Shown one piece after another: positions 28,561 to 50,005 of a DNA stretch of 64,000 bases (position 1 is its first letter; each line of letters begins with the position of its first letter). This stretch comes from Scyliorhinus canicula (Eukaryota): positions 1 through 64,000 of the forward strand of contig NW_024055477.1 in NCBI RefSeq assembly GCF_902713615.1. The letters are read 5' to 3'. The notes beneath the pieces are model-generated. The model was given only the letters and a program-made list of their open reading frames with translations. It ran no database searches and was not told the DNA's origin. A program made the position numbers and the translations under genes.

Positions 28561-28720
28561 GAACAGCAAACGGAGGCTGCGCCCCGAGACACCGCAGATT
28601 CTAAACTAGTCAGACTGTGCGGCTGGTATCATCTGCAGGCGGGATTGCAGGAGCGGAAATAGCGACGGTTGAATCTCTGGAGACTTGTGAGCATCCTGCA
28701 CCTGTTCACTGCTCATGTGA
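28561..28720 (+). promoter_or_regulatory. V-associated conserved module, copy A
   Basis: Contains ACCGCAG, TGTGCGG, GGAGCGGAAATAGC and CACCTG. The homology with 49770-50340 extends over 28500-29060. Confidence 0.55.
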
Positions 28721-29468
28721 GTGAGGGACTGGCATGCATCGCCCAGAAGTATCAAAAATTAGGGAACGGAATGAACATTCGGCACATGCCTATTTGAAAA
28801 TGCTGTCCCAATCGTCTTTCGCACACCACATTTTCCATATTGCTTTCCATTCTCAGATTATGAAAGTCACCTTTTGGCAGTTCTTATTGAATCTTCTTTC
28901 ATCATTTTCGCGTTGTGTTCTAGATGTTAACAAATCGGAATATTATGAATAAATACATCATTCTCTATCATATTTTTCTATCAAATCGGGATGATTTGTC
29001 ATTGGATCTGCTGCTAATGGGAACAATTACAGCAAAACGATTTGAGTCTTCCTTCTACCTCTATTCTTACAAGCAAATGAACCCAGAATTCTCTGGTCTT
29101 TGCATAAACGGCCCTCGTCCCTGTTAATATTTAAATATATAACATCTTTCTCCAACGTCCTAATACTACTCCTCATTTGTCGTGCACAGGATTTGGAAAG
29201 AAACGGGCAGCAAAGATTTCATCGATTTAGTGTCCGTTTCTGACACAAACATCAACAGTTGTAAAAACTGTTTCCTAGCAGATCTAGTTTAGATTTCTGG
29301 GAGACATTCATGTTTTTGTTTTGTGTATTTCAATGCACCCTCAATCCATTCAGTGGCTGCATTCAAATAGGAATGAAACTATTCCGGCACCAGAAGGTGC
29401 CAACTTCAAACATGGGGATGATGAAGTTCCGTGACGGCACCGTCAAAACCAATAGACGTCGTGGTCTG

Positions 29469-29478
29469 AGTGATGTCA
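29469..29478 (+). promoter_or_regulatory. TCR V promoter decamer
   Basis: AGTGATGTCA, 125 bp upstream of the V2 ATG; also present at 38990, with variant AGTGAGGTCA at ~32728. Confidence 0.65.
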
Positions 29479-29602
29479 GAGTGGGCCTGGTCCCCTGCAG
29501 TGTGTGGGTGGAACAATGAGCTGAACAGAGCCCGGGTTCCCTCTCGGCTTCTCAATCTCTGCCTCATTCCATTCCCATTCACTCAGAGAGGTTCAGTCAG
29601 AC

Positions 29603-30108
29603 ATGTTTCTGTTAATACTGGCGGCCCTGTTGGACGGTAAGTAATGGATAATGGTCGTCAAACCAGATTAGCAGTTTCTGGATTGCAATTACATTGAATA
29701 TAATTAACGATCAGAAATATCCACATAGTTGAGTTTCCACAAACTCACAGATATACAAACAAATTTAGGTGAATTATGTTTAACCTATCGATGTTTCATT
29801 TATTTCCCTTCGCAGGCGGGCGAAGTGCAGATGCAATAACTCAATCACCGGTGACAAAAACCGTGTCAGAAGGGGTTTCGGTGCGGCTGGATTGTGAATA
29901 TACAGACTCGAATATGCAGTACATGCAATGGTATCATAAGAAATCGGCACAGCCACCAATCTGGATTATTAGCAAATTATTACATCTGAAGGATGATGCA
30001 GTTTCAGGACGATATCTAGCGGCTGCTGACAAGTCTAAACAGAACGGTTACCTCAATATCAGCGATCTCAGTGTGGAGGACGGGGCGGTCTATTACTGTG
30101 CAGTGAGG
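29603..30108 (+). CDS. TRAV/TRDV: TCR alpha/delta V gene (V2); leader exon 29603-29636, V exon 29816-30108
   Basis: MFLLILAALLDG|GRSA leader, gtaagt donor, cgcag acceptor; LDCEY, WYHKK and DGAVYYCAVR. Confidence 0.92.
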
Positions 30109-30147
30109 CACAGCGTTAGATAACAGCTGGTGCCCCGTACAAAAACC
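30109..30147 (+). other. 23-RSS of V2
   Basis: cacagcg + 23 + acaaaaacc. Confidence 0.93.
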
Positions 30148-30209
30148 TCGGCGAGTAGTCACAGCTTCACTAAATCTGCTTTGCTGCTCCTGTCTGAGGG
30201 AATTGTTTG

Positions 30210-30602
30210 ATCCTGGATTCAGGAACACAGTCAGGTCTATTCATCATTCAGTTATATTGGTGTCTCTGCTCTTCTGCGGGTGAACAGATGAGCAGTTTGG
30301 GAAAATACGCGACTCATTTCCATGCAGCAATGTACATGGTAAATTAAAACTTGGAATACCGGGCTACCAGCAACGGTAATAACAGCTCTCAGATGTGGAG
30401 ATAATGTAGCTGGAAGTTAAAGATTGTTCTTCCAGAACAGTTAACTCAGATGAGCCCAAGGCCGCTGAGTCTACCCCGTTAGTTCCTGTAACAAAAGAGT
30501 GTGTCAATCTCTGCTGTTGTATTTCACATATGGAATTCAGAATAAGAACTTTAACAGACTGACGGAGCAGCACTATTATTGTTATCATGCAGGACCATGG
30601 GG
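30210..30602 (-). pseudogene. V1-family V pseudogene, tail-to-tail with V2
   Basis: ttacag|GTNGVDSAALGSSELTVLEEQ parallels V1 GTNGEDAVFQDRSELKVLEGQ; C23 is lost and there are in-frame stops. Confidence 0.7.
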
Positions 30603-30783
30603 TCTGCTTTAGGCTTCAGTATAAAATCGATTTTTCGATCGAAAACTCATCTCTTGCCTGTTGCTGGAGAGTCACTTAGATAAGGGACGTGCTTCAGAAG
30701 GGTACACCCCACGGTGAGGGCTATAAAACTGCCGGAGCTCGAATACATCCACAAGTCATGAAGGCCCTGGAACGCCACAGCCT

Positions 30784-47052: not shown

Positions 47053-47363
47053 GAGCAGGGTACAGGGTTCTGAACTCTTTGTTTCACAGTGTCTCACTGC
47101 ATTGTAATACACCGCACAGTCTGTCAGCTCAACCGTGTTAACACTGAGAGTGGTGGAGCCTTTCTCAAGGTCCAGGGATACTTTAAAACTTCCCTGAACT
47201 CTTTAACCTCCGAGTGTGGAGACCAGATACTCGGGAGCTTGATTGGAGAACTGCTGGCACCAGTCATTTGTAGTGAAAGTAGCGTTGTGATGAAGCGAGA
47301 TAGTCTGACATTGTGTTACCCGAGATATCGATATCTGAAATGTCTCTGAATGACAAGGAACAG
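47053..47363 (-). pseudogene. V pseudogene (V8); V exon 47092-47363
   Basis: ttaacag|..ETFQISISR..ISLHHN..DWCQQFSNQAP..GG*RVQ..TDCAVYYNAVR; both cysteines are lost, with one stop; heptamer cactgtg and degenerate nonamer. Confidence 0.8.
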
Positions 47364-47969
47364 CTGTTAAAACAGAAATAAAATTAACATCACGATATGT
47401 CCATGGAGAAATAGATAAAGTGCTTGAGTATATAGGCAGAATAGGCTAATCTAACAGTCTATCTATCATGATGTGAAGATGCCGGACTGGGGTGGGGCAG
47501 TAAGAAGTTTTACCACACGAGGTTGAAGTCCAACAGCTTTGTTTCGGAACTTCTTACTGAATCTATCTACCATTCTATTTGTCTGTCTGTGTTCCCATGA
47601 CTATCTAACCATCTATATACCGACTATCAATTTTTCTATCTATCTGCATCATTCATTATCTATCTTTCTCTTGCACGTCAATCTCAGTATTTGAAAGAGA
47701 AAGAAGAGTCAGATTTTCTGCCTGTGTCTTAACTTTTTAGTTTGGGACAATTAAATAGAGAACTTTACTTAACCTGCCCTGTTCCTCTATACCTCCTGTA
47801 ACAGAGGTTATTCCTAAGCACCGCGTTCTCAACCTTGTCCCTCGACAGAGGATGTGGTGATCATCCGGTTAAATCACCACCAGTCAGCATTCCACTCAAA
47901 GTGGAGAGCAGCCTCTGCTGATTTGGGTCTATGGCGGCTTTACTTTACTAGTAACAGCTATAATGTTTC

Positions 47970-48218
47970 ATCATAGAATTTACAGTGCAGAAGGAGGCCA
48001 TTCGGCCCATCGAGTCTGCACCGGCTCTTGGAAAGAGCACACTACCCAAGGTAAACACTTCCCAATAACCCAGTAACCCCACTAAGGGCAATCCACCTAA
48101 CCTGCACACACGGGGAGGATGTGCAGACTCCGCACAGACAGTGACCCAAGCCGGAATCGAACCTGGGACCCTGAAGCTGTGAAGCCATTGTGCTATCCAC
48201 AATGCTACCGTGCTGCCC
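47970..48218 (-). mobile_element. HE1-like SINE family B (internal deletions)
   Basis: Head gggcagcacggtagcattgtgg and B-box present. Confidence 0.85.
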
Positions 48219-48346
48219 TTGTGTTGGAAGATTGTCCAGATAGAAGTTTGAACATGGGAAAGTAACATTTATGACCATCACCGGCATTTCTAAAGGTTCT
48301 GGTTTGGGGAAAGGTTAACGGGGCAGCGGAGACCCGACAGAGAACA

Positions 48347-48385
48347 AGATATTGTCCAGCCGGATCCGCTCTGTGTGTCACTGTG
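48347..48385 (-). other. 23-RSS of V7 (weak nonamer)
   Basis: cacagtg + 23 + acaatatct. Confidence 0.8.
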
Positions 48386-48768
48386 GCTGCTTCGCACAGA
48401 GATACATTCCGGAGTCCTGGACCGCGCTCTCATCTATACAGATGGTATTGGACTTCTTTGTTCTGTCAAAGGACAGGGTGTAGCGTCCTTTGGTCTCAGT
48501 CCCCTGGTAAATGGAGGCGATAAATGTGGGAGCTCCTATCAGTGTCTGTCTGTACCAGGCTACGGAATAGCCAGAACCGATGGAGAGCCAGCAATTCAGT
48601 TCAGCCTGATCCCCTTCCCGGGACACCGCCTGCTCAGGGTGGGAGCTCTGATCCTCACACTGAACAGCTGGGAACAAAATAAAATCCACATAACCACACG
48701 GTGTTATGTGATTGTTAAAACAATGCATCAGATAAGAAAATAAACTCACCCAATATCAGCAGCTTCAT
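48386..48768 (-). CDS. Divergent TCR V gene (V7); V exon 48386-48667, candidate short leader exon 48750-48768
   Basis: cccag|AVQC-EDQ...LNCW...AWYRQ...DSGMYLCAK; candidate leader atgaagctgctgatattgg|gtgagt is unusually short. Confidence 0.75.
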
Positions 48769-49850
48769 AGTTCCAGCTGGAAACAGCTCTTTCCTGGGAT
48801 TCCTGGTCACGATGATGAAAGTGGACAAAAGGCGGATCAATCCGGGTCTGATTTCCAGACTGGGACTTGTCCCCCCCTCAATGTGAGACTGAGGGGCCAC
48901 ATTGTCACCGATTGGACTATTATGGGATGTCCTTACCTGGCGTTACTCACGGTGCCACTGAGCGATTGGCTGTTTCTCAATCCATAGACCACTTGAACCG
49001 TCACTGATTCCAAACCTCTCTGCTTCCTGTGTGTAACACCAGGTTACAATGATTCAGATAGTCAGTGCTCTGTGTCCTGTCTGACTGAGCAGAGCCATTG
49101 ATTATCTTACAGCCCAAAGAGAGGAAATTCGGTCCATTATTTTGTATTGTCTCGCTTAAGGAGTTATCCACTGATTAATTATCTGCTTGTTCCATAGATT
49201 TCATCATTTTTAAATTTCTATTTACTGGTCCGATATTTATCCACTTCTTCCTTGAGCTGATTGTTGGATTCTGTTCCCGGCAACGTTTCTCGTGCACTTG
49301 CTCTAGTTGCTGAAGTCTCTGCTCAGGATTATTGTATTTCATCCCTGCGTCATCTTTCCCAATTCCTCCCACACTCTGTCTGTGCGGTTAATACCAAATG
49401 AAAGAAGAGTAACGGAACCATCCATGTGTTTGAACAGCATTCCCAACAGCGATATGTACATATTTACACTTGCTGTATCTTTTCTAATGCCTGCGTCGTT
49501 GTTGATAAATCCTGGATCCTTTAACTCTGTAACATCATCAGCATCGTGTTCCCAAATTTTCGCATTCGATCCCTGAGATCTTTGTCCTCTTTGATTCATG
49601 TAAATTATATTTACTTCTGAGTTCCTGCCTCATTCCATCTACTTTATATGTTTATATGATAGAATCAGACACAGCATTTGTGGTTGCACTTTAGATCAAC
49701 AACTAATGTTCTTCCGTGTTTATTCAATGCAGGAAATGATCTGCTGACGCAGCCATACAGATTCCTGCACCACTGCATTGTTTACAGAAGTAATGATAGG
49801 AAGGGGCCAGAGGCAGCGATGTATCCACCAGCACAAACGGTTCATATCGA

Positions 49851-50005
49851 GAGCAGCAAACGGAAGCTGTGGTCGTGGACACCGCAGACTCTAAACTGAT
49901 CAAACTGTGCGGCGGATCAACTGCTGGAGTGGAAATAGCGATGGTTCAATCTCCAGAGGCCTGTGACCATCCTGCACCTGCTCACTGCTCAAGTGACTGA
50001 GAACA
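49851..50005 (+). promoter_or_regulatory. V-associated conserved module, copy E
   Basis: CGGAAG, ACCGCAG, TGTGCGG, GGAGTGGAAATAGC and CACCTG. Confidence 0.55.

Follow-up and report, generated by a model that had tools for sequence, protein, structure and literature searches.

What is the non-coding sequence that recurs five times among the variable (V) genes at the start of Scyliorhinus canicula contig NW_024055477.1, and which genes does it serve? The stretch analyzed here, hereafter the window, comprises positions 1 to 64,000 of the forward strand of that contig (assembly GCF_902713615.1) and is a catshark V-gene cluster whose top protein matches are V domains of Scyliorhinus torazame (protein search). 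An earlier description made from the letters alone, hereafter the sequence-only reading, presented the recurring sequence as a ~150-bp module with ETS, RUNX and E-box motifs and proposed that it was a distributed, possibly bidirectional enhancer lying between divergent V genes, rather than a transposon. Our analysis instead indicates that the element is probably the promoter and 5' regulatory block of one V subfamily, the V4-type genes, and that it was spread by gene duplication.

The names V4-type and V2-type are those given to two V subfamilies by the sequence-only reading; the V4-type is one subfamily of catshark T-cell receptor (TCR) alpha/delta-type V genes. The window contains nine V segments on both strands (tblastn with V exons) and a tenth, decayed segment at ~30.8-31.3 kb that was recognized by translation and profile. 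The copies of the block, lettered A to E and compared with one another throughout, are five related sequences inside this one 64-kb window.

Number, extent and arrangement of the copies

All five copies claimed by the sequence-only reading are present. The gapped pattern ACCGCAG..TGTG..GGAGYGGAAATAG matched the window five times, at precisely the five copies, and matched none of 100 dinucleotide shuffles. Likewise, a profile hidden Markov model (HMM) of the copies (nhmmer) returned exactly five full matches in 64 kb, the only other hits being the internal 53-bp repeats of copy D. The element is nevertheless longer than had been claimed. Since the profile HMM matches span copies A to E at 260-280 bp, the homologous unit is about 275 bp rather than 150 bp, and the 150 bp originally described correspond to its distal part, -165 to -320 from the V4 ATG. 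The five copies are as follows:

28451..28725, minus strand: copy A, an orphan block 878 bp upstream of the start codon of V2-type gene A (profile HMM)
31482..31739, minus strand: copy B, before a decayed V4-type gene, with a 22-nt deletion in its distal part
36077..36355, minus strand: copy C, the probable promoter and upstream block of an intact V4-type gene
39406..39665, plus strand (V4 sense): copy D, inverted relative to the others, a partial duplicate of a V4 5' end
49745..50014, minus strand: copy E, an orphan block (profile HMM)

Together the copies spread over 21.5 kb of the V cluster, and three of them have V4-type sequence attached. By the profile HMM, none of the window's other V genes is preceded by a copy, and this holds for the related V gene at 24743 as well. 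A pattern scan for the block in JGI metagenome contigs gave 0 matches, and a V4 protein scan of the same contigs gave 0 confirmed matches.

Copy C lies directly upstream of an intact V4-type gene

The V4-type gene next to copy C has a split leader, which the mechanical list of open reading frames (ORFs) does not show. Its parts, which together look intact, are:

35988..36033, minus strand: leader exon L-part1 MGNRLASLLIFISLL, with its ATG at 36033, phase 1 and a GTAAGT donor; homologous leaders are found in copy D and in contig L001 (see below)
155 nt, minus strand: leader intron, with its acceptor at 35833 (..tgttag then AA)
35529..35832, minus strand: V4-type V exon, with 75% amino acid identity to protein P0005
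35528-35489, minus strand: V4 recombination signal sequence (RSS), with heptamer CACACTG, a 23/24-nt spacer and nonamer ACAAAAACC

Because the real ATG is at 36033, copy C spans positions -44 to -322 of the V4 gene, on the same strand. What had been taken for a free-standing intergenic enhancer is thus probably V4 promoter and upstream region. The sequence-only reading had missed the split leader of this gene, whose ATG is only 44 bp away. Its broader claim, that divergent V genes are separated here by a non-coding block of regulatory appearance, was borne out.

Two further observations concern this gene. The minus-strand ORF at 35372-35860 suggests an unsplit leader started by TTG and is misleading, the true leader being a separate exon at 36033-35988; other calls of an 'intronless leader' in this genome may warrant the same re-reading. 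In addition, a CTCF-like core, CAGCAGGGGGCGC, lies at 35450-35462 (minus strand), 26 nt past the nonamer of the V4-type RSS.

Copies B and D are attached to remnants of V4-type genes

We found copies C, D and B to align collinearly from the block through the 5' untranslated region (UTR) and L-part1 into the leader intron. The block therefore does not stand by itself in B and D, the attached V4-type sequence being:

31086..31439, minus strand: V4-type pseudogene beside copy B, with a leader lacking ATG and donor and a V exon containing stops
39610..39824, plus strand: tandem repeat in copy D of the CCAAT/TATA-like core promoter piece (4.1 x 53 bp, 90% matches)
39867..39985, plus strand: leader region of copy D, with an intact V4-type L-part1 MMGNRLAQMLIIISLL followed by GTAAGT (39867-39915) and then ~70 nt of leader intron

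Copy D is 84% identical to copy C, and the homology between them extends to 35918 on the C side and to 39985 on the D side, where the homology of D to the V4 gene stops; no V exon follows. Given the block, the intact leader and a homology that ends within the intron, we conclude that copy D is an inverted, truncated V4 5' end. It abuts a V2-type gene fragment at 38962-39392 and cuts off the V exon of that fragment. As the sequence-only reading had stated, copies B and C are each flanked by a V4-type gene on the minus strand and a V2-type gene on the plus strand; at B, the V4-type gene is the pseudogene listed above. Its statement that D and E lie upstream of a V leader holds for D, by virtue of the V4-type L-part1 at 39867, and fails for E, for which no leader of its own was found.

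No V4 leader or exon was detected adjoining copies A and E. Homology between these two copies extends to 28848 and 50141, respectively, and that of copy E reaches the position of the 5' UTR, without a leader exon. Thus, the block stands directly upstream of a V leader on the same strand in C, D, B (where the leader is decayed) and L001, and in A and E it does not.

The surroundings of copies B and E hold further features. Between copy B and V2-type gene B, a 47-bp piece at 32399-32445 is 90% identical to the framework region 3 (FR3) part of the V4 exon (35565-35612) and stands away from any V4 gene body. Past copy E, 11 minus-strand tRNA genes form a tandem array (52141-60201, ~2.3-kb period) that begins after ~350 bp and is bracketed by a 295-bp direct repeat of 89% identity (50360-50654 and 61236-61530). 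This array may have separated copy E from a former V2-type partner.

An independent V4-type gene has the same layout

A single relative of the V4 exon turned up in the database, namely P0005 (75% amino acid identity), and it lies on a pair of short metagenome contigs, L001 and L002. Both contigs carry the block collinearly, directly before a leader of their own (MVNYLTPIIIIISLL followed by GTCAGT). Between the copy C region and L001, the V exon is 86% identical, the block 84%, the 5' UTR 83%, L-part1 80% and the intron 78%, as opposed to 67% for the 3' flank; therefore, the V4-near part of the block has been kept about as well as the V exon itself. The block is conserved inside the V4-type subfamily and has been duplicated with it, and it does not stand before the window's other V genes.

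These results bear on whether the copies are instances of a transposable element or dispersed repeat family that carries the motifs by chance. Such an origin would agree with a multi-copy sequence of which one copy is inverted, in a window rich in short interspersed elements (SINEs) and other repeats. However, the copies lack terminal inverted or direct repeats and have ragged, inconsistent ends, they are collinear on one side with V4 leader, intron and exon, their divergence equals that of the neighbouring gene parts, and they have no match to an Rfam family. Moreover, the profile HMM found no copy in the 28 kb before copy A or in the tRNA array, and no extra copies elsewhere in the window. 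Because the copies adjoin parts of V4 genes collinearly, and because L001 has the same layout, we read the element as a V-gene promoter block, in agreement with the sequence-only reading insofar as it rejected a transposon, and regard a mobile origin as extremely improbable.

Taken together, these findings indicate that the five copies arose by segmental duplication of V-gene units rather than by transposition. Copy C now fronts an intact gene and copy B a pseudogene, copy D belongs to a truncated, inverted 5' end, and A and E are orphans.

Motif content of the block

The motifs named by the sequence-only reading occur in the numbers that it gave, ACCGCAG and GGAG(C/T)GGAAATAG being present in all five copies and TGTGCGG and CACCTG in four of them. 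The copy lacking TGTGCGG is D, which reads TGTGTGC, and the copy lacking CACCTG is C, where the motif was removed by a 6-nt deletion. The RUNX core occupies an identical position in 5/5 copies, ETS cores are found in 4-5/5, and each of the five has at least one E-box; the motif set of the block includes ACCGCAG, GGAGCGGAAATAG and CACCTG. Motif offsets were counted in copy C from the ATG at 36033 on the V4 strand:

-57, V4 strand: TATA-like TATTTCTG (motif match only)
-93, V4 strand: inverted CCAAT box (motif match only)
-165, V4 strand: ETS-like CTTCCG (consensus string)
-176, V4 strand: GC box (consensus string)
-186, V4 strand: RUNX-type CTGCGGT (consensus string)
-224, V4 strand: E-box CAGCTG (consensus string)
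-251, V4 strand: CTATTTCCGCTCC
near -300, V4 strand: E-box CAGGTG, in copies other than C

The motifs named by the sequence-only reading fall at -180 to -300 on this strand, and the CCAAT and TATA-like core promoter elements, as motif matches only, stand at plausible distances from the leader. Motif scans of the five copies revealed no conserved GATA (WGATAR), TCF/LEF (CTTTGWW) or cyclic AMP response element (CRE) decamer (TGAYRTCA) site; similarly, they revealed no CTCF core in any copy and no YY1 motif in the block.

Two other properties were considered and set aside. The observed/expected CpG ratio of the copies is 0.56-0.87 compared to a window median of 0.59, and an argument from a CpG island was dropped, as the ratio of the copies is inside the background of the window. 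A structured RNA was likewise rejected: folding of 230 aligned columns with RNAalifold yielded -18.6 kcal/mol and a covariation term of 0.04, and the copies had no Rfam match.

From the position, duplication history and conservation of the block, we infer how a V4-type gene might be used. Factors of the ETS, RUNX and E-protein classes, together with NF-Y and Sp1-type factors, would bind the block; the bound block would drive germline transcription of the V segment in the T lineage, opening the segment to RAG; and after rearrangement the block, together with the locus enhancer, would drive transcription of the assembled gene. Binding by ETS, RUNX and E-proteins, enhancer activity and bidirectionality, as put forward by the sequence-only reading, are predictions from consensus strings.

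Several observations weigh against reading the block as a V4 promoter in every copy. First, with no V4 leader or exon detectable at A and E, the word promoter describes for these two copies their history and not a present role. Second, contig L001 reaches only to ~-190 and has not preserved the RUNX block, and the comparison with that independent gene consequently covers the V4-near part. Third, the motif names given above are matches to consensus strings only. Finally, the whole block is 69% identical between copies A and B, which is no better than the 73% of the V2 leader intron beside them. We nevertheless consider a V4 promoter and 5' regulatory block the likely identity of the element.

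The distal half of the block is better conserved than the V4-near half

The sequence-only reading had suggested comparing the conservation of motifs with that of spacers. We found the invariant columns to be clustered and the indels to lie in the spacers. In permutation tests, the densest windows (7-20 columns) had p values of 0.0007-0.03, and the longest invariant run had one of 0.007. In the distal half, 55% of columns are invariant and gapless, compared to 32% in the V4-near half (Fisher p 0.0014); correspondingly, mean pairwise identity, gapped columns included, is 0.75 in the distal half and 0.63 in the proximal half. Distal halves are 73-86% identical in every pair of copies, while proximal halves are 64-71% identical in every pair except the young C/D pair. 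Resting on five related sequences, these conservation statistics have a thin base and are fragile.

Beside copy B, where the V4 gene is dead, the V4 exon has fallen to 68% and the intron to 62% identity with their counterparts at copy C, in contrast to 76% for the distal half. Among the copies without a live V4 gene, distal identity is 75% for A/B, 85% for A/E and 86% for B/E, whereas proximal identity is 64-67%. Conservation of the far end of the block is thus unusually high, even where the V4 gene is dead. This suggests that the distal cluster may be under a constraint that does not depend on the V4 gene, and such a constraint would be in keeping with the cluster serving the intact V2-type genes that lie divergently beside copies A and B.

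Since the distal half is better kept than both the V4 core promoter and the dead V4 exon, a role as a shared or bidirectional enhancer has to be weighed. The distal ~140 bp would then be a unit of its own that serves whichever neighbouring V gene is alive, including the V2-type genes ~0.9 kb away, and it is consistent with this that copies A and B retain all of the conserved blocks and that each has an intact V2-type gene on its other side. On the other hand, the V2-type genes have a well-conserved promoter of their own (87% identity between V2 genes A and B), the 75% identity of the A and B distal halves is close to the 73% of the V2 leader intron, and the distal half is the richer in indels, with 57 gapped columns compared to 18. 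Gene conversion or a recent death of the gene could yield the same distal pattern, and five related sequences make for fragile statistics on this point as well. On balance, we find a shared enhancer of this kind unlikely.

Conversely, copies A, B, D and E could be dead relics of duplicated or broken V4 genes, with the block in use only at copy C and at genes such as that on L001; the similarity left among them would then reflect past constraint, a short time since death or gene conversion. Consistent with this, copy B adjoins a decayed V4 gene, copy D is cut short, and a V4 gene body is missing at both A and E. In the two young pairs, C/D and A/E, moreover, the block shows no more conservation than the sequence flanking it: identity between C and D is uniform (84% in the block and 82% in the flank), and that between A and E is 76% in the block and 78% in the 3' flank. 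Losses are also found in each of four copies, C having lost an E-box, D TGTGCGG, E CAGCTG and B 22 nt. The relic explanation does not readily account for the survival of two core blocks in 5/5 copies, or for a distal half that consistently surpasses both the proximal half and the dead exon, and we consider it somewhat unlikely as an account of all four copies.

The V2-type genes have promoters and leaders of their own

The structure of the V2-type genes bears on whether the block might belong to them. They are:

29469..30147, plus strand: V2-type gene A, with decamer AGTGATGTCA at 29469-29478, L-part1 at 29603-29636, V exon at 29816-30108 and a 23-RSS at 30109-30147
32728..33383, plus strand: V2-type gene B, with decamer-like AGTGAGGTCA at 32728-32737, L-part1 at 32846-32879, V exon at 33052-33344 and a 23-RSS
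38962..39392, plus strand: V2-type fragment downstream of copy C, comprising a promoter, a leader that lacks its ATG, an intron and ~80 nt from the start of the V exon

The V2-type genes carry a proximal promoter with a classical decamer, ~0.9 kb from the block. Their leader lies ~180 bp before the V exon and has a GTAAGT donor, and the spliced leader is confirmed by the S. torazame protein P0001. A model in which the block was the V2 promoter together with a leader and a 1-kb intron was consequently ruled out, as the true V2 leaders are at 29603-29636 and 32846-32879, in agreement with P0001. The decamer of these promoters is of the mammalian V-beta type and is found at 29469-29478, 32728-32737 and ~39000 (AGTGATGTCA or AGTGAGGTCA). 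A 32-bp stretch at 29514-29545 is 94% identical between V2 genes A and B.

Toward the V2-type genes, the block ends in a reading frame for a leader-like peptide (in copy D, MNLQKTVTILHLLTVQ). This end might on that account be an old V leader, or else a first exon from which a non-coding transcript runs divergently. Copies A, D and E keep the frame open without gaps, and copy C has lost 6 nt from it in frame; in A, B, C and E the frame is followed by GT, and some of the differences among copies are third-position changes. However, an ATG is present in D only, the corresponding site reading TTG in A and C and TTC in E and being deleted in B, and an in-frame TAG lies just upstream. The frame would also give a phase 0 intron, while V leader introns are phase 1; its antisense is equally open; the true V2 leader is at 29603; and no relic of a V exon follows. 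We therefore rejected the leader-like ORF as a real exon, and hold a relic leader or a divergent first exon to be very unlikely. The aligned antisense ORFs had 0 matches in a protein word search, which also missed the window's own ORFs, so that its blank result carries no weight.

Other features of the window

Repeats and other features elsewhere in the window were as follows:

31800-32131, 17416-17612, 41524-41700, 45192-45542 and 63538-63733: SINE-like repeat copies, one of which sits between copy B and V2-type gene B
5723-5821, 9100-9198, 17906-18004 and 21880-21978: a conserved ~100-bp segment of a second repeat family
42534-42773: G-rich 24-bp minisatellite, ~10 units
22591-23058: 78-bp tandem repeat, ~6 units
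38113-38611, minus strand: reverse-transcriptase-like ORF fragments between copy C and the V2-type fragment
60531-60663: assembly gap

The reverse-transcriptase-like fragments look like the insertion of a long interspersed element (LINE) that stretches the spacer between copy C and the V2-type fragment to ~2.7 kb.

Comparison with known systems

A literature search on how the V segments of shark antigen receptors are switched on found nothing, and little seems known on the subject. The block provides a concrete candidate promoter for one catshark TCR V subfamily. Its consensus vocabulary (ETS, RUNX, E-box, GC box and CCAAT) matches that of mammalian TCR enhancers and promoters, and sharing this vocabulary would point to a T-lineage regulatory code inherited from the common ancestor of jawed vertebrates. 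In addition, the conservation of the distal part beside dead V4 genes amounts to a small natural experiment on whether regulatory pieces of a V cluster are reused by neighbouring genes.

Mammalian TCR V-beta promoters carry a conserved CRE-like decamer, AGTGAYRTCA. Like mammalian TCR V promoters, the V4 block is specific to a subfamily, lies within ~300 bp of the leader ATG and is duplicated with its V gene; it likewise combines motifs for lymphoid factors with a CCAAT/TATA-like core, and would be expected to act in transcription of both the germline and the rearranged V segment. In contrast to mammalian V-beta promoters, the V4 block is without the decamer, while the neighbouring V2 promoters have one. 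It also differs from mammalian V promoters in that its best-kept part is at -165 to -320 and not in the core, and in that orphan copies persist without a gene.

Like the enhancers E-alpha and E-beta, the block packs consensus sites of the ETS, RUNX, E-box and GC-box types into ~150 bp, where they are kept better than the spacers. E-alpha is bound by CREB, LEF1/TCF1, RUNX1, ETS1, GATA3, E2A, HEB and SP1 (PMC7696796). In contrast to E-alpha, the V4 block is multi-copy and promoter-proximal and is without conserved GATA, TCF/LEF and CRE sites; E-alpha and E-beta, unlike the block, are present once each, close to the C region, and exert their effect over a long distance.

The Pax5-activated intergenic repeats (PAIRs) in the distal VH cluster of mouse Igh offer a third comparison. 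These are 470 bp long and occur in 14 copies, 11 of the 14 being associated with VH8 genes; they bind Pax5, E2A, CTCF and YY1, contain a promoter of a long non-coding RNA, and act as local enhancers of V recombination (PMC10390877). Like PAIRs, the V4 block is a non-coding repeat of a few hundred bp that is dispersed among V genes and tied to one V family, and it has E-protein sites, here consensus E-boxes. Unlike PAIRs, it has no CTCF or YY1 motif and abuts a V leader. The likeness is one of layout, and homology in sequence is not expected. By analogy, the distal ~140 bp could be a PAIR-like repeat that outlives its own V gene and acts in thymocytes as a local, orientation-independent accessibility enhancer for neighbouring genes, those of the V2-type included; judging from the sequence patterns described above, we think this quite unlikely. 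If true, this would make it the first described example of its kind from a TCR V cluster and from a cartilaginous fish.

Set against these systems, the element belongs to a known class, that of subfamily-specific V-gene promoter/upstream blocks, and is of an ordinary kind with a putative function.

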